DNA of 51,892 nucleotides from Bigelowiella natans CCMP2755 (GCA_000320545.1 ADNK01001010.1:1-51892), one strand, 5' to 3'. Shown: positions 31,882-41,225, numbered from the stretch's first letter. The notes: generated by a model not told the origin, from the letters alone. Made by a program: numbers and translations.

Positions 31882-34158
31882 TGTGTATGTGTGTGTGTGG
31901 ACATGTAGGTATGGATTATAAGAGGAGGGATCAGAAGAGGTAGGAGGAAGAAGGCCTTACGTGCTTCCTACCTCGGAGTCTCTCCCATACGATGATCTCC
32001 ACGGTATCTGCTTACAGATAGGGTTGCCCTCCATCCGGTCATAGTTTGCGACGGCAACCGAATTGAAGTAAAAAAACTCGCGCCATAGCAGCTGCCCTTC
32101 AAGGCTCTGCGGCGGCTTTGTAACGATCATTTTCGCTCCGTGGCTGCCCCCCCTCCCACCCTTGCTCCCCTCCCGCATCTTGTTCGTCTTCGTCAAGTGC
32201 TTCTTTTTCTGTTGCTTGCCGTTATTTTTCTTCAACTCAAGCTGCATCCTGCTCTGATAGACCCTCCGCACCTCCCAGTAGTACAGCCGTGCCGAGAGGC
32301 AGCCGAACTTGAGATAGGGGCTAAGAGCCGTTGTCGCAGGCTGTAGAGCGGTAGGGTTGGTCTTTGGCTTGGAGAATTGACAGATAAACAGCACGCGAGA
32401 GAGTTGCTTGTGCATCCTCTTGAGCGCATAGGATTCCCCGCCAGGGAATAGAGGCAGTGCTGCTCGATTTTGTCCTGATTGTTCAAAGAATCCATTATTC
32501 CTGATCGGCCCTCTCTCAGTTCCACAGTTTATTTCACTTCGCTCACTGTTCTTTGTCTCTCACGTATCTCTCTCTCCCTCTCTCTTTCTCTCCTCCCCCC
32601 TTTCCCGTCGAAAGTGAAGGTGTTTTGTGTCCAAGTCCACCTAAGCCTCCCCCACCCGCCACCCCGTCTCTGAACAAAATTGCCTTTCTTCTTATAATCG
32701 GAGTCTTCATCTTGCTCATTTTCTTCTTCGTCGTCATCGTTGTCATGGGTTTCATCCGGATATCCCAACTCTGTTAGGGTGGGCACTGTGTGTTCCGTGG
32801 CAGCGAATCGACCGTGTAAGTCACGATCATCTCTCGGAATGGCGCGCGGGGGGGGGAGAGGCTCTCCAGGTCCCTCGTCCAGCGACTCTAGAAACTTCAG
32901 GAACGCGCTATACGACGTGATTCCCTTATGATTTGCGGATAGGAAGAAGATTGCAACATTTTACCGAGAAATCGCGATGAATCAAAAATGATGATGACAA
33001 CAACGGCGACGATGACATAGCAACACACCAGCAGAGTAGCTACAGCAACAACAAGTGTGAGGGGATATCCTTCTGCATGTACCTTCTTCGGATGGTTTGC
33101 CTTCTTTACGAGTTTATCGATGTTATAGAGCGTGTGTGAATGTCGAACCGCGACTTCAACGCCGGCTTCATTCGCCAGCTTCGCTATTTTCGCATCTCTG
33201 ACCCTCGCGTATGGCTCTGTGTCGTGCTCCCAGCTTATGCGGTTGACGCCCCAGCACGAAATGAGGTTCGGAAATACCTTTCATGTATGCAGCAACTTGA
33301 AGCAGCATTCCCCACTGTTGCATGATGATTACAGCGCTACCGTTCTATAAAAACGCATTCTGCCCAATTGGTCTATCTATCATATCATATCTTAAATCAC
33401 ACCTTATAAGGGCTGCCTTTCACAACGAACAGTCGAGAGTTATACCGATTTTGCAGAGTCGCATCAAGGTCGCTGAGGGCCTCTAGAAGGAACCTACATC
33501 GGACTTTCCCGACCCCTTGAACCACCTTCTTCTTCCTATTCTTCTTCTTTCGTTGTCCTTCTCCTTTACCGCCATTGCTACTAGATCGTCGACTACCGAA
33601 GAAGTGCGGATCAAGAACGAATACGGGATACACCGTATGAGCGCCCTCACACGCAGCAAGCAGCGAGGGATTATCGTGAAGTCTAAGTCCTTTTCTAAAC
33701 CAATGGATGACAACGTCCTTCCTACTTCCCGACTCGTGTTGTTGTTGCTGCCGCTGCTGCTGCTGTTCCCCCTGCTGCTGCTTTCGATCGTGAAGAGAAA
33801 GCGGACGAACGGATGCTGTTCCCCCTGCTGCAGCTGCTACATCACGTCGCTTGCGCCTGCCCCCTCTCCAGCCTACTTTCGCATACTCATCCTCCATTCC
33901 ACCACCGTCTGATGTCGTTGTTCTATTAGATGTAGACCGTATATGTTGCTGAATCCCAGCGTTACATCCCGCCGTCTGATTCCTTGCATGGACCCCTGCT
34001 GCTGACACCGACGAAGAGCCATCTCCCATTGACGAGGGAAGATGCTCTCGCTGCTGCGGCTTCTTCTTCCTAGACCTTGGCAAGCCATCTCCCTTCCTAA
34101 GCCGTCGGGATTTACCCTCCTCCCTCCTCCGGGCGTCGCGCATTTGCCTCCACGCCAT
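30960..34158 (-). CDS. (6-4) photolyase / animal-type cryptochrome family protein
   Basis: IHWFRKGLRLHDNPSL; RFLLEALSDLD..SRLFVVKGSP; WEHDTEPYARVRD; FPGGESYALKRM; TTALSPYLKFGCLSAR; PPQSLEGQLLWREFFY..MEGNPICKQIPW; GYPYVDAIMTELKETGWVHHIARHMAACFLTRGDLWISWERG..DADYALNNGNWMWVSASAFF; WEPWRAP..CVVGKDYPFPVVDH. These motifs are diagnostic of the 6-4/animal CRY clade. Confidence 0.95.
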
Positions 34159-34361
34159 CCCAGCCTATCGTGCTCTTTCAGCCAGAAAGGAGATAACACT
34201 GCGGTTTTAGCGCATAAAAGCCGATTTATTTGTTGTCGCATACGAGAAAATCGCATTGATTCTAAGAAGAATTTATTGTGCCGAGAGAAAGGCCCATCCC
34301 TGCCACACAAAGAAAAAAGAAAAGAAAGACCCATCCAACCCCCCCTGGCCAGACATCACCG
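34159..34361. promoter_or_regulatory. Putative bidirectional promoter between the two photolyase genes
   Basis: About 200 bp, microsatellite-free, between divergent ATGs at 34158(-) and 34362(+). Positional inference only. Confidence 0.5.
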
Positions 34362-37213
34362 ATGGCCTCTCAAAAAATCCTTGGTGCAAGCGTTAAGGTA
34401 CGAGGGCGGGGATGATACAGACAGAATTTGACCACGACTACGACAACGACAAATGATGATAATGATGATGATGGATGATGATTGTAAGGTGGAGATGAGG
34501 ATGATGACTTCATGTGCTAATCCAAACATTGCATGAGAGCCAAGAGAGAAGTGATGATGATAGAGGCACATTGGTAATGGTCATCAGCTTGCAAGCGTGG
34601 CAAGAAGTGGCTGACGAAAGACATCGCAGCGGCGGCGGCGGCGGCAGCAGCAGCCATCCTGTTATGCAATTGCGGTGCTGGCGTGTATGGTGGATCATCG
34701 CCGCTGCTGCGTCGTTTGCCATGCACTTCGTGTGCCAAATTCGTGCACAACATGACAACCACCAGCGCCACAATTTTCTGGTCTCTCATCCTGGTCCTTC
34801 TGCCATCTCTTCTCCTCCTCCACCTCCTGATGAGCCCTTATCATATTCTCCTCTCATCAACAAGGATGCCGACCCAAAGGCACTTCTCAAGCTATTCGAT
34901 AAACTGGTAAAGCAAGATTTCTTCCCACAGCAAAACCGACTGTGATGTTGACCGAGTGGTGTGCGATGAGAATGGTGGTGGTTGCGGTGTGGCGATGGTA
35001 GTGTGACGGAAGGTTAGCGCGGTGCTCTGCCTTTCAACAAATAAAGATGAAGGAAGACCCCCTCCTGTCACTCTTCCTCCCACCCCATCCCTCGATATTA
35101 GAATGTTCTGATTGTTATCAGGACAAGGAGGAGATGACGGTTGAAAGGCTAATCAAGGAGCGTATCGGAAAGAGCGTCAATAAGGCAAGTGTCACAACCA
35201 TTTTATTACTACTCGATCACCAAAGCTTTTCGTACAAACATCTTGACCTGAGTGTGGATGCTGACTGCCGGATTAATGACTGTTGTTGTAGTTTCGGAAG
35301 CATGAGAACGAGAAGGTAGCCACCCGAGCAAGACAGCTCGTAGCCAAGTGGAAAGAAATTTACACCAAAAGCGGCAAAAACAAGCTGAAACGGCCGCTGG
35401 AGGCATCGTCTTCTGGGACAAAGGACGATGCTTCTTCGAAGCGATCCAAAGGTGATGAAGTGTTACCCGGATGATATCTATCCTTTCCCCCCTCGTCCAC
35501 TTTACTTCGTCCGATTAATTCACGAGCCTAATTGCTTCGTTTTCTTTCGATGTCTCTTTCAGGGAGTAAAACTTATGCAAAGTGGGAGGACATAGCAGAG
35601 GACAACGACGGGGAAGCGATGTGAAAATAGGCGAATGGCCCTCTGATGGCACTGTCAAGTCACCCTACAAAGTAGAGGTCGGTCAGAGATGATTCTTCCT
35701 CCTTTCTCTATCATCATAACAAACACTCTCTTATCCCCCCTTTTAACGCAGGAAATCGTAAATCCGGACAGAATCCGCTTAGTAGACGAATCAACTTTCG
35801 ATAGGGTAGGTGCAATCTCCTTGGCTGAGTGCGGCGATGAGATCCTACCGACATCTTCCTACTTGTGATTGTTGCTATTTCCTACTATGTTGGAAGGCCC
35901 AATGTTATATCCACCGTGTTTGAATGAAAGACGTTTTGTACTCACCAGGAGCGTCCTGAGCAACTTGACATTGGCGCAAAGGCAAAGGTGGCATTCGGGG
36001 GGAGGGGGGGGGGTTGTGGAGGGTGGAGGAGAGTTGTGTGCTGGTGCTGTGCACGGAAGAGGCTGTATGCATGGCGGAACAGTGATGGAGGGCCATTAGA
36101 GTACAGGAGAATCGTCTTTCCTCTCACTGCTGACACTGCTGCTGGTGCTGTGCGGCTGTTCTTCTTAGATCAGGCCACTTGGAATCACACACCCGAAGAA
36201 GGGAACGATCGCTCTCGAACGCACAGGTGATGGGATGGCCTCCAACGACTCAAATTGAAAATGATAATGACAGTGCTGCTGCTGCTGCTACTTTTGGCCG
36301 CGAATGATGATAGTGATATTGATGCAAGCACTCACGAGAGCGATGTGATATGTGGCGCTTTGCTGTTGAGTCATTTTGTCCTTTTCTTTTATAAGACCGA
36401 CAGGATCATAGCACCACCACCACTGATACGCTGCTTGCTGATGTATCACTCTTATTTCCTGCGTTCCATTGCTATGCTAACCACGCACACAATACAATAC
36501 AATGCAATACAGGGCCGGTTGTATATTGGATGTCGCGGGACCAACGGTGTGTGTGTGTGTTTGTGTGTGTTTGTGATTATAAATACACAACAACAAACTC
36601 AGTCAATCAACGTCGCCTTTAACATGACTAGTCTTTCTATTTGTGATTTTTTGTTAATACCCAACCACTCTCCGCCCCCTGGCCTTGTACTTGTTTCCTC
36701 GCGTAATCCTTGTATCTTTCTCTTCGGTCAACCATTCACAATAATCCGCTCTGTGAGGATTCTAAGCAGCCCCCCCTCCTTTTGGAACCATCAGATCTCA
36801 GGACAACTGGGCATTGCTATTCGCTCAGCAACAAGCAGAAGCCAATGGTACGACGGGATTTTGATTCTTTTCGCTCTCCGTAGCAGTTTTTTGTGTGGGT
36901 AGTGGTAGTAGTAGTAGTAGTAGGAGGAGGAGGAGGAGGAGGAGGAGTCTTTCCCAGCTGATGAACGTAACTGCCATTGTCTCCATCATAATCATCATCG
37001 CCATCGTTATGCTCATCATCATCATCACCGTCATCATCATCATCATCATCATCACCACCACCACCATTATCATTTTACTCATCTAGGAGTTGGATTGGTG
37101 GTAGTCTTCAACTTAGTGCCGACGTTTCTTGAAGGTGATGGGGTGCAAATAAGCAAGTGATTGAACAAAACGAACGCAAATTTAAACACACACATACACA
37201 CACACACACACGC

Positions 37214-37263
<50 letters not shown>

Positions 37264-37595
37264 GGAGAGGGAGAGAGTTGCAAAAAGCAGTTTTTTCTTT
37301 CCCCATCATCTCCAACGTTCTCCAATCTATTCCACTCTTCTGCGTGTGCGCGGGTATAATCTGCTCACGGATACCCCCCCCCCCCCCTTTCCGAAGTTGG
37401 CAGCTACCAATACGAAAAGGCAGTACGGGTTCATGGTACGGGGACTACGGAAGGTGCAGAGCGAGTTGAAGAAAAAGCAAATCCCCCTCACGTTGTTGTT
37501 CGGTGACCCTCAAGAGACGATTCCTCAGTTCATGCGCAAATACGGTGATTTATTTATTGTAGCATCGAGGATGATGATGATATTGATGATGATAT

Positions 37596-37630
<35 letters not shown>

Positions 37631-38636
37631 ATGTTGGTGATAGTGAGAATGAATAGTTGAAATAGCTTGATAGTGTTTCGCTTGTGGTCTCGTTGTTATT
37701 GAGCTTCTTCCTCTCTTCCTCCTCCCACTCCTCCCCCTCCTCTGCTCGCGATTTGCCATCTCCTAGATTGTGCCATGCTGGTGGGCGACTTCTCCCCCCT
37801 CAAGATCGGTTACATATGGAAGCAGCAAGTGAGAAAGAGACGGAAAATACAGAGCAATATCAACTATTATTATATACCAGGAATGCCTAGAATTCTTATG
37901 CTAAGACTCTAAATATTGGGGGTCGCTCTTGTTGCTGTTATAATTGTAATTCTTCTTCTCTCCGATCTCAATAGCCTCCCCCCCCTCCCCCCCTCGTCTT
38001 TGTCCGTACACACTACCAGGTTTTTGCTAAGCTGGATGAGAATGTCCCATTTTATGAGGTGGATGCACACAATGTGGTGCCTGTTTGGAAGGCGTCGGAC
38101 AAGGTACTAGCATCTGCTGCTCATCATCATCAATTATACTTGGAAGAAGGCTGTTGTGTTGTAGCAGCGTCGTATAGTCGCTGTACATTCTAATGACGTA
38201 GTGTCATCATGTGCCCCCAATTCGACTATTTGCAACCGCGCCATAATTACTGATATCGCCGTGGCGGCTGCAGCTAGAGTACGGGGCACGCACCATCCGG
38301 AAGAGGATCCACACGAAGCTGGGTCGATATTTGACGAGATTTCCAAAGGTATTAGGGAGATGATGATGATGAGGATGATGATGAGGAGGATGAGGATGAT
38401 GGTGATAGGGGACAGAGTCGGAGCCAAATATTGGAACTACTGATCTTCTGTCCACATCTATCTCCTCCTCCTCCTCCTCCTCCTCCTCCTCCTTCTCCTT
38501 CTTACCTAGCAACACTAACAGCACCAAAATGCAAGCATATACTATGATTACATGATAAGCACCTTTAAATTAATAAATATGTGTGTGTGTGTGTGTACTC
38601 TACTTCAACTAAGACTCAATTACTTTGTCCAACCTC

Positions 38637-38672
<36 letters not shown>

Positions 38673-38900
38673 CCTGCAGCTAAAGACCCATAGCTGCAAA
38701 TCCATGCCAACCGAGCTGCAGTGCGAGAAGATCAACCCCATCTCGTTCCGTCAGCTCGTCAAGGAAGGCAGCATCGTGGTGGATGGGGAGGTTGATGAGG
38801 TGGGGTGGTGCCGGCCGGGAGAAGAGTATGCACAGCAAACGCTCACTGACTTTCTCAGCAGGAGGGTACGTAGAAGGAGGAGGCAATACACATATTTAAG

Positions 38901-38936
<36 letters not shown>

Positions 38937-40822
38937 TATATGTACGCATACACGAACAAGGGAGAAAAGACGTGGGTAGAAGTTGCCAACCTTCTTACAG
39001 GAGATACACTGATGATCTTAATCCTTCCATGATCACTAATTCGCCTCGCCTCTCCCCGCATTTCCCCCTCTTCTTCGCAAATGCAGGCGAGGATGTTCGG
39101 AACGAGCCGCAACGACCCAACGAAGCCAGAGGCCTTGTCGGGATTATCTCCATACCTCCATTTTGGTCAAATCGCCCCTCAAAGGGCTATTCTAGAAGCG
39201 TTTGAGGCAAAGCGAGCTTCAAAGAACTCCAGCCTCAATGAGTCCTTTGACGGTTTCATCGAGGAGGTACAACGTCGCTAGTTAGCTAGCAGTAGACGCC
39301 TCCTCCTCACCGAGTACACTACTCAGTGTTAAGTTTGTCCTCAGCGCACGCAAACATATGTGTGGGTACTTGCATGCTCACATGCTACTGTTACTACTAC
39401 TGCTACTACAACTTCTACTACTACTGCTACTACTGCTGCTACCTCTACTACTCTTTGACATGTGTTTTTAACATCCCGCTGGCCATCTCGTCACAGGCCC
39501 TCGTGCGGCGTGAGCTGAGCGAGAATTACTGTTTCTATAACCCTGACTACGACAACCTTAACGGGTGTTGGAACTGGGCTAAGACCACGCTCGAGATACA
39601 CTGGGACGATAAAAGGAAGAAGGTACTAACTAGCCTTTAACCTCGAGCATATTGAAGAGGAAGAAGAGGAGTGACGAAATATGGCTCAGCATCCCCCCCC
39701 CCCCCCCCAAAGCCACAATGAACGAATAAAACCGATGTACACGCAACACACACCATAGGAGTACAGCCGAGAGCAACTTCAAGAAGCGAAGACACACGAC
39801 GGTCTTTGGAATGCAGCACAGCAGGGAATTCTAATTGATTAGTCTGCTTGCTTATCGTTTAAGCAGATTCGTTAATATTCTCCGCTTCTTCATGGTTCTC
39901 TCGCCTCTTAATCTTGTCCGGTCTCCGTAACTCTCACCTTCCTGATCTACTGCTCTTTCCCCTCTTAACGGGTGTCATCATCGGCATAATGCTGTTGCCT
40001 CCGCATCATATACAATAAAACAACAACAACAATCACGCAAATCAGGAGCTTGTCTATAAGGGCAAGATGCACGGGTTCATGCGGATGTACTGGGCGAAGA
40101 AGATCTTGGAATGGAGCGCCAATCCAAAGGAGGTGCGCGGAATATACTAGTGGGGATTCAGCGGCACGATGATCTTGGGTCTTGTGATGTCGCGCCCTTA
40201 GAAGGCCGAACATGGGACGTGGATCATCGTCGGTGTTGCTATCTGCCAATTAGCCTTGCTTCACCAGTTTAGAATTAGAATCCTCTCTGATGCGCATTCA
40301 TTCAAATGTGACGAAATCAATGATGGGGGGGGGGGGGGGCGTGCTATTACACAGACGATGACGGCATGTATGGCAACGATGATCATGATAATGATGCTGA
40401 TGATGATGACAATCATCCCTGCAGGCAATTGAGAACGCTATATATCTCAACGACAGGTGGTGGCAGTGGTAGTGGTAGTAGTGGTAGTGGTGTTGATGCA
40501 AGGACGGGGGAAAATAAATAACAATGGGCTTCAAATTATTTAATTTGTTTTTCCTCTGCCATCTTGTGCTCAGCAGCTGTACTTACATGCACCTCACGTG
40601 ATCAGATATTCTCTTGATGGAAGGGACCCCAATGGATATGTCGGGTGTATGTGGAGTATCGCTGGAATCCATGATCAGGTGGAAGGGGGGGGGGGTGCGG
40701 GGTAAAAGAGAGGGGGGACAGAAAATTAGATCACAGTTTGAAGTGAATGGCAGAGTAATTTTCCAGTCATTTTTGCGTTTTAAGCGATAAGGAGAAGAAG
40801 CGTGTCTCAATGATGATGATAT

Positions 40823-40867
<45 letters not shown>

Positions 40868-41225
40868 ATGAGACAGAGAGAGATGATGAATTCATTCATT
40901 AATTTATTATCGATATGACCATCCTGAGAACGTTTTTACGGTATCAAAGGGGTGGAAGGAGCGACCCATCTTTGGGAAGATACGATACATGACTTACGAC
41001 GGGTTGTTTATAAAGAGTCTTTTGTCAAGAATGATGATAGAGACCGCATGGCTGCTCAGTTCATCATAACGGCTCCTGATGTTTTCCCAATGCGATGAAC
41101 TAATGATATATGATTTCACTCTCCTTGTTGTCCTAATCCTTTCCGTTTTCTGTTTTTGTAGATGCAAGCGAAAATTCGACATCGGTAGATACATGGTCGC
41201 AATGCGACGTCTCATCCGACGGTGA
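34362..41225 (+). CDS. Class II CPD photolyase with N-terminal TFIIS-N (TND)-like domain
   Basis: Photolyase exons: [23 protein letters not shown]; [10 protein letters not shown]; LVGDFSPLK; [25 protein letters not shown]; [26 protein letters not shown]; [17 protein letters not shown]; [10 protein letters not shown]; [18 protein letters not shown]; [43 protein letters not shown]; stop TGA 41223-41225. Upstream exons 34865-34906, 35122-35184 and 35292-35451 give [53 protein letters not shown]. The junction at 35563-35625 is ambiguous (see findings). Confidence 0.9.

Follow-up and report, generated by a model that had tools for sequence, protein, structure and literature searches.

[quoted passage not shown] A preliminary description of the sequence had proposed that three upstream exons splice in frame to the photolyase core, that the core lacks a start codon of its own, and that no earlier report of the resulting fusion was known to its author. 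The window, by which we mean the whole stretch of 51,892 nucleotides that was analysed, is eukaryotic DNA with numerous short introns. We conclude with high confidence that the locus is a single gene of 24 exons on the plus strand, running from 34295 to about 41400, in which a TND, a linker and a class II CPD photolyase are fused (Table 1). The best explanation overall, to which we give somewhat better than an even chance, combines this fused gene with TND-guided photorepair at transcribed DNA.

Spliced transcripts across the two sets of exons

Four public runs were compared with positions 34200-36900, namely three sets of contigs from three different studies and one run of raw RNA reads (X21), which placed only 7 reads on this interval and was uninformative. 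The label 'RNA' is a guess for the three contig-set runs, whose contigs are k-mer assemblies rather than single molecules; that they derive from spliced RNA follows from the fact that the contigs skip GT..AG intervals. The preliminary description had called for transcripts spanning the upstream exons and the start of the photolyase, and each of the three runs supplies one contig (2098, 2052 and 536 nt) that joins the TND exons to the photolyase exons, as an assembled contig and not as a molecule. Every such contig has the joints 34906>35122, 35184>35292, 35451>35563, 35677>35752, 35805>35949, 35987>36169 and 36226>36513, and continues past 36513 via 36795-36847 into the following exon. A separate joint, 34397>34865, connects the exon with the ATG at 34362 to the first TND exon in three runs. 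The two long contigs (2052-2098 nt) begin at 34863 and are about as long as expected for the rest of the coding sequence (about 1900 nt) with a short 3' UTR.

The three TND exons that had been proposed (exons 2 to 4 in Table 1) are borne out, each of their boundaries coinciding with a splice joint that the contigs of all three runs show. The same is true of the unusual GC donor suggested at 35184, since the intron at 35185-35291 is compatible with GC..AG only (joint 35182>35290, with 2 ambiguous bases). The original exon list was nevertheless incomplete, in that it missed the first coding exon and the 39-nt exon 7. Exon 5 has introns on both sides and bridges the two domains on one spliced contig. 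A loose end at 34808, present in three runs, was considered as an alternative upstream exon and rejected: its 30-mer lies on another contig (C3496), which has in common with the window just a short TC-rich low-complexity run, and we attribute the loose end to an unrelated transcript that matches here in part.

Table 1. Features of the fused gene in the window (positions counted from the first nucleotide of the window).
Feature	Position	Strand	Evidence
Exon 1, 5' untranslated part	34295..34361	+	Contig starts at 34295-34313
Exon 1, coding part, ATG and 12 codons	34362..34397	+	Joint 34397>34865 in three runs; translation
Exon 2, TND start (first helix)	34865..34906	+	Contig joints; local TND profile, model residues 15-74
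Exon 3, TND (Med26 profile positions 8-27), then GC donor	35122..35184	+	Pfam E 0.035; joint
Exon 4, TND end (Med26 positions 28-51), then K/R-rich NLS-like linker	35292..35451	+	Pfam E 1e-5; joints
Exon 5, 115-nt internal linker exon bridging TND and photolyase frames	35563..35677	+	Joints 35451>35563 and 35677>35752, one contig per run, three runs
One-base difference deciding the frame, AA in window vs AAA in transcript contigs	35614..35615	+	Contigs; translation
TGA ending the TND frame, solely in the window as assembled	35622..35624	+	Translation
Intron 5, contains ATG 35689 (in frame with exon 6, spliced out)	35678..35751	+	Contig joints
Exon 6, conserved N-terminal arm of photolyase	35752..35805	+	Contigs; ortholog alignment
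Exon 7, 39 nt	35949..35987	+	Joints 35805>35949 and 35987>36169; conserved in P0001 and P0151
Exon 8	36169..36226	+	Contigs
Exon 9, photolyase core start	36513..36546	+	Joint 36226>36513; 3' end by frame and homology, beside skipped repeat
Exon 10	36795..36847	+	Contig pieces 36794-36848
Exon 11	37087..37134	+	Contig loose end behind 36848 reads exon start; 3' end by homology
Exon 12, Pfam DNA_photolyase	37404..37544	+	Pfam E 9.2e-7 (37397-37543); boundary by homology
Exon 13	37767..37828	+	Frame, GT-AG sites, homology
Exon 14	38020..38103	+	Translation and ortholog alignment
Exon 15	38274..38348	+	Translation and ortholog alignment
Exon 16, interdomain linker	38680..38865	+	Translation and ortholog alignment
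Exon 17, FAD-binding domain start, used as search query	39087..39266	+	Best match P0001, 76% identity
Exon 18	39497..39622	+	Translation and ortholog alignment
Exon 19, then intron without GT or GC donor in the assembly (ggaatt)	39759..39824	+	Junction forced by ortholog identity
Exon 20	40046..40132	+	Translation and ortholog alignment
Exon 21	40425..40456	+	Translation
Exon 22	40606..40678	+	Translation
Exon 23	40950..41002	+	Translation
Exon 24, stop TGA 41223-41225	41162..41225	+	Translation

Reading frame and encoded domains

As the window is assembled, the frame of the TND passes the acceptor at 35563 and meets the TGA at 35622-35624, and the photolyase frame, open from 35570, lies one base off it. 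All covering contigs, whichever of the three runs they come from, read AAA against the AA of the window, an insertion of one A behind 35613. Without this A the reading frame stops after codon 120, whereas with it local translation gives a single frame of 643 codons from the ATG at 34362 to the TGA at 41223-41225; the missing A is the sole reason that both parts look like separate frames. The proposal that the TND exons splice in frame to the photolyase thus holds with the extra A of the contigs and fails in the window as assembled. The locus is single copy in its own genome, in which no second copy or haplotype with the extra A was found. The simplest reading is that the lack of the A is an assembly error, although the AA of the window may alternatively represent a strain variant or a true genomic frameshift allele. 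Either way, a one-base error or variant at 35614-35615 would split the gene model.

The proteins of relatives have conserved residues directly after the frameshift site, W-[PA]-S followed by K-Y-x-[VI]-E ahead of the conserved arm, which means that the downstream frame encodes protein and has to be reached from upstream. A single ATG, at 35689, is in frame with the first photolyase exon (exon 6); it was rejected as an independent photolyase start because it sits in an intron that the transcripts remove. The earlier statement that no in-frame ATG precedes the core is therefore incorrect for the genomic sequence and correct for the mature mRNA.

These observations bear on the alternative that the locus holds two genes, one for a 120-residue TND-only protein ending at TGA 35622-35624 and one for a separate photolyase, with contigs that merge overlapping or read-through transcripts. 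The stop is present in the window sequence itself, and a contig may run across two genes and still be no proof that they share one transcript. However, each of three studies has one contig in which exon 5 is joined to an exon at either end, the extra A abolishes the stop in all contigs, the mature mRNA lacks a photolyase start codon ahead of the conserved core, and the mRNA of a relative (below) is one fusion ORF with conserved residues on either side of the site. We regard two genes as highly improbable. The claim of one gene for the TND and the class II photolyase is upheld by the spliced contigs, by an ortholog with both Pfam domains and by the recurrence of the pair elsewhere.

The 643-residue product of the fused gene has three parts, an N-terminal TND (model residues about 15-74), a low-complexity linker of ~115 residues with an NLS-like basic stretch, and a complete class II CPD photolyase. 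Translation of exons 2 to 4 returns the TFIIS-N-like peptide reported previously, followed by its K/R-rich NLS-like stretch. Pfam searches were done exon by exon, and a spliced model was built locally for translation, alignment, profile search and tree construction. Exon 4 alone matches Pfam Med26 (PF08711) with 25.7 bits against a cut-off of 20.6; exon 3 scores 14.4 bits, below this cut-off, over profile positions that are colinear with those of exon 4. A local TND profile, built solely from the TNDs of other fusion proteins, matches the spliced model at residues 15-74 with 65.7 bits (E 3.8e-20). A PDB sequence search with exon 4 alone, a query too short for the purpose, gave a chance match only. 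When the Med26 Pfam search was run over the organism's own genome one other locus passed, in a census that split exons make poor.

On the photolyase side, exon 12 matches DNA_photolyase (PF00875) with 29.4 bits against a cut-off of 26.6. Placement of the exon 11/12 boundary at 37142/37397 was discarded since it produced an insertion found in no relative, and 37134/37404 was used instead. The spliced model keeps 75/75 invariant columns of a 40-sequence class II alignment, and by these sequence criteria the core is a typical class II CPD photolyase with predicted repair activity. On the minus strand an ORF starting at 34158, a divergent neighbour of the fused gene, also has a DNA_photolyase domain (Pfam, E 1.2e-19).

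A search with exon 17 gave as its best match a chlorarachniophyte transcriptome protein, P0001 (MMETSP0113, taxid 91329; 76% identity over the exon), of which P0269 is a fuller form of 688 residues. Over 637 aligned positions this ortholog and the window model share 68% identity, and they share 76% over the 476 columns of the photolyase-domain tree alignment. The ortholog contains Med26 (E 1.4e-13, full profile) and DNA_photolyase (PF00875, E 6.9e-31) in one ORF, and by sequence comparison the TND-photolyase architecture is conserved in this relative. In a PDB sequence search the nearest solved structure to its TND is Elongin A (6zuz, E 1e-8), followed by TFIIS, MED26 and PNUTS, and the nearest to its core is the rice class II photolyase (3UMV, E 2.7e-151), the best solved matches of the core being class II only. 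AlphaFold2 applied to P0269 predicts five helices at residues 40-129 with pLDDT 82-96, a disordered linker at 130-186, a short ordered arm and a confident photolyase core. In a fold search the modelled core superimposes on 3UMV with a TM of 0.92; for the whole P0269 model, photolyases fill the matches listed and no TND is among them. The five-helix bundle is accordingly a prediction made in a 68%-identical ortholog. With the Pfam match, the PDB matches of the ortholog to Elongin A and TFIIS and the predicted bundle, the original TFIIS-N assignment is retained, and the N-terminal domain is judged from its sequence to be a TND closest to the Elongin A/TFIIS type. A search limited to the N-terminal 190 residues of the ortholog returned nothing beyond its own cluster, from which it follows that the fused protein of the window organism is absent from that collection at comparable length.

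The nature of the core is also relevant to a reading in which the fusion is a light-dependent transcription regulator, its photolyase fold serving as a cryptochrome-like sensor and its TND as an output domain on the elongation machinery. Dual photolyase/cryptochrome members do occur in algae (CPF1-type proteins), which counts in favour of such a regulator, as does the fact that the TND is a module of the transcription machinery (PMC9987994). Against it stand the typical class II core, with every invariant column kept, and the nearest solved relatives, which are repair enzymes. Furthermore, we know of no class II member that acts as a signalling cryptochrome. A regulatory role of this kind appears improbable.

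The domain pairing in other algae

PF08711 and PF00875 occur together in 11 among the best 120 relatives of P0001. From Pfam coordinates and the local profile, three placements of the TND can be distinguished. It is N-terminal in the window protein and in P0269, P0151 (environmental), Chattonella subsalsa P0171 and P0248, so that this arrangement is common only to the chlorarachniophyte proteins (P0001/P0269 and P0151), Chattonella and the cluster P0248. It is C-terminal in Cymbomonas tetramitiformis KAK3239372.1, in Mantoniella antarctica A0A7S0SHQ2, in P0163 and P0175, and in many marine clusters, most of them assigned to Chlorophyta. In P0169 and P0193 it lies between the alpha/beta and FAD domains. 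The green prasinophytes thus have a C-terminal TND, whereas haptophyte-like sequences have it either at the C-terminus or between the photolyase domains. The internal form occupies one unbroken ORF of 1875 nt on a metagenomic contig of 12.7 kb, and for one C-terminal form the database record gives a complete gene of 1938 nt. At least four lineages therefore carry the fusion, namely chlorarachniophytes, a raphidophyte, prasinophyte green algae and haptophyte-like sequences; some of the carriers are abundant marine picoplankton, and there are culturable organisms among them.

In a tree of the photolyase domain, from which a gap filter dropped the TND columns, the chlorarachniophyte group (support 100) stands apart from the prasinophyte group (99), and a third clade (100) mixes C-terminal, internal and TND-less forms. 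This third clade is probably haptophyte, as it includes the Chrysochromulina parva cluster. A tree constrained to place the 22 fusion proteins in a single clade is worse by 283 log-likelihood units and is rejected (AU p 0.00036). Since there are three insertion points, losses alone cannot explain the pattern, though the tree cannot tell gains from losses. Across the groups the TNDs are only 17-40% identical, and the domain is too short for its sources to be traced. Chrysochromulina parva, land plants and animals have photolyases without a TND, indicating that the TND is dispensable for photolyase function as such.

Because the fusion recurs, class II photolyase and the TND are likely to be functionally linked; this is a Rosetta-stone type of argument, connecting this enzyme with the network of TNDs and their TND-interacting motifs (TIMs). 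Given that at least three separate arrangements of the domain pair arose in other algae, it can be argued that the pairing is selected for. The pairing suggests that in these algae photorepair may be steered to transcribed DNA.

Possible function and relation to known systems

The TND is a non-enzymatic five-helix bundle that reads short, disordered TIMs in Pol II elongation and chromatin factors, with TFIIS and Elongin A competing through their TNDs for a TIM of IWS1 (PMC9987994). Elongin A itself is brought to Pol II where DNA is damaged (PMC5399097). Yeast photolyase is inefficient on the transcribed strand of active genes, probably as a result of stalled Pol II hiding the lesion, and UV mutagenesis is raised there (PMC12153352). 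On this basis a mechanism can be envisaged in which the TND would bind the TIMs of Pol II elongation factors (IWS1/SPT6-type partners), and the long flexible tether with its NLS-like stretch would let it dock the photolyase onto the elongation machinery. The enzyme would thereby be kept on transcribed chromatin, or beside a Pol II that a cyclobutane dimer has stalled, and blue-light repair could then reach those lesions in transcribed genes on which a free photolyase performs poorly. Recruitment to Pol II is made more plausible by the recurrence of the fusions. We give tethering of the photolyase to the Pol II elongation machinery by the TND slightly less than an even chance.

A less specific role for the TND, as a general handle for nuclear or chromatin retention or as a stability module that raises nuclear photolyase with no particular link to Pol II, has to be weighed against such tethering. 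TIMs are present in chromatin and other nuclear factors as well as in elongation factors (PMC9987994), the linker has an NLS-like stretch, and a TND on a long, predicted disordered tether would suit any kind of recruitment. On the other hand, an NLS by itself would suffice for nuclear import, the nearest solved TNDs are those of Elongin A and TFIIS, both of them Pol II elongation factors, and independent fusions to the same enzyme suggest a specific advantage. We consider a general retention or stability role rather unlikely, and return to recruitment by the elongation machinery.

[quoted passage not shown] We advance this wider reading tentatively, as a possibility. Photolyase has so far been treated as a free-standing, genome-wide repair enzyme, and light-driven repair coupled to transcription within one protein would, if true, be a mechanism of high interest. 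The TND-bearing photolyase offers a concrete way, open to testing, in which plankton exposed to sunlight might target photorepair to transcribed DNA.

Full-text literature searches found no description of the TND-photolyase pairing among the papers that they listed, and a review of TNDs names no DNA repair enzyme among TND proteins (PMC9987994). The preliminary description, in stating that it knew of no report of the fusion, agrees with these searches, but such proteins were already in databases. The Cymbomonas tetramitiformis 'DNA photolyase phr1' and its Mantoniella antarctica counterpart, the MMETSP proteins of Chattonella subsalsa and Norrisiella sphaerica, and many marine metagenome clusters all have a class II photolyase and a TND in one ORF, as here. 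None of them is annotated or described as a fusion; they are named as plain photolyases with automatic Pfam matches. The parts are known and the architecture is on database record, yet it is apparently undescribed.

The catalytic part is the same as in the class II CPD photolyases of rice (PHR, PDB 3UMV) and Methanosarcina mazei (PDB 2XRY). However, the class II photolyases that have been solved and studied are without a TND, whereas here a TND and linker of ~190 residues stand ahead of the core. The likeness of this domain to the TNDs of Elongin A, TFIIS, MED26, IWS1, PNUTS and LEDGF lies in the PF08711 match and in the closeness of the ortholog's TND to solved Elongin A and TFIIS; for the ortholog a five-helix bundle is predicted. 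Known TND proteins are transcription regulators, whereas in the fusion a DNA repair enzyme carries the TND in cis. The proposed logic is that of TC-NER (CSB/CSA/UVSSA/ELOF1, and Mfd in bacteria), in which repair is sent to lesions that block RNA polymerase; TC-NER excises the lesion with many factors, whereas under the proposed coupling one light-driven enzyme would be tethered. The TND of LEDGF/p75, its integrase-binding domain, brings an enzyme activity to transcribed chromatin (PMC9987994), as the TND would here, but LEDGF recruits its partners in trans through their TIMs, whereas in the protein encoded here the enzyme itself bears the TND.

The fusion gene in the assembly and in spliced transcripts

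Within exon 5, the assembly reads AA at 35614-35615, whereas transcript contigs from three studies read AAA. With the shorter version, the fusion gene falls apart into a product of 120 residues and a photolyase that has no start, and gene models derived from this assembly are therefore probably wrong at this position. Exons 19 and 20 are separated by an intron that, as assembled, has neither a GT nor a GC donor, and alternative equivalent cuts are no better. Either this intron is non-canonical or the assembly contains a further error here.

Two minor isoforms affect intron 1 (34398-34864). In the first, splicing to a different acceptor at 34588 (depth 71 versus 250, and 6 versus 40) leads to a stop after eight codons; in the second, seen in a single run, the whole intron is kept. 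Low-depth retention also occurs for intron 8 (36227-36512). A partial alignment at 34808 was rejected as part of the fusion gene, as the transcript contig concerned, found in three runs, derives from another locus (contig G000:C3496, 38948-38977) and matches the window through a TC-rich low-complexity run. The introns of the fusion gene are dense in microsatellites, namely (GGA)n, (ATC)n, (AC)n, (AT)n, (AG)n, (GAT)n and (CT)n.

Coordinates of the neighbouring gene, unusual introns and intronic repeats (window positions)
Feature	Position	Strand	Evidence
Divergent neighbour with DNA_photolyase domain	33397-34158	-	E 1.2e-19
GC-AG intron	35185-35291		Confirmed by splice joints from three runs
Intron between exons 19 and 20, GG..AG	39825-40045		Exact junction forced by identity with the chlorarachniophyte ortholog
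Microsatellite stretches in fusion-gene introns	36880-37070, 37180-37285, 37560-37640, 38370-38500, 38640-38680, 38900-38940

The divergent photolyase neighbour

The gene on the opposite strand encodes a basic, Q-rich N-terminus of 150 residues ahead of its photolyase domain, and a TND is absent from this segment. Some 140 bp separate its ATG from the positions where the fusion-gene transcripts begin, and a bidirectional promoter common to both photolyase genes is therefore probable.

Other photolyases with possible accessory domains

A long-branch class II photolyase cluster, P0177 (589-751 aa; NCBI, JGI and ENA sequences), gives a weak TND-like match at its N-terminus with the local profile built from the TNDs of other fusion proteins (E 1.5e-5), a match that precomputed Pfam does not list. 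This cluster may represent an additional, more diverged N-terminal TND fusion. For P0157, a class II photolyase of 891 aa from Chlorella sorokiniana named 'CPD photolyase isoform B', two protein-kinase Pfam domains are listed, which reflect either a further fusion to accessory domains or a gene model that merges separate genes. In protein clusters from Planctomycetota, a DNA_photolyase domain occurs together with amine-oxidase/NAD-binding domains, and these are a different, bacterial kind of photolyase fusion.
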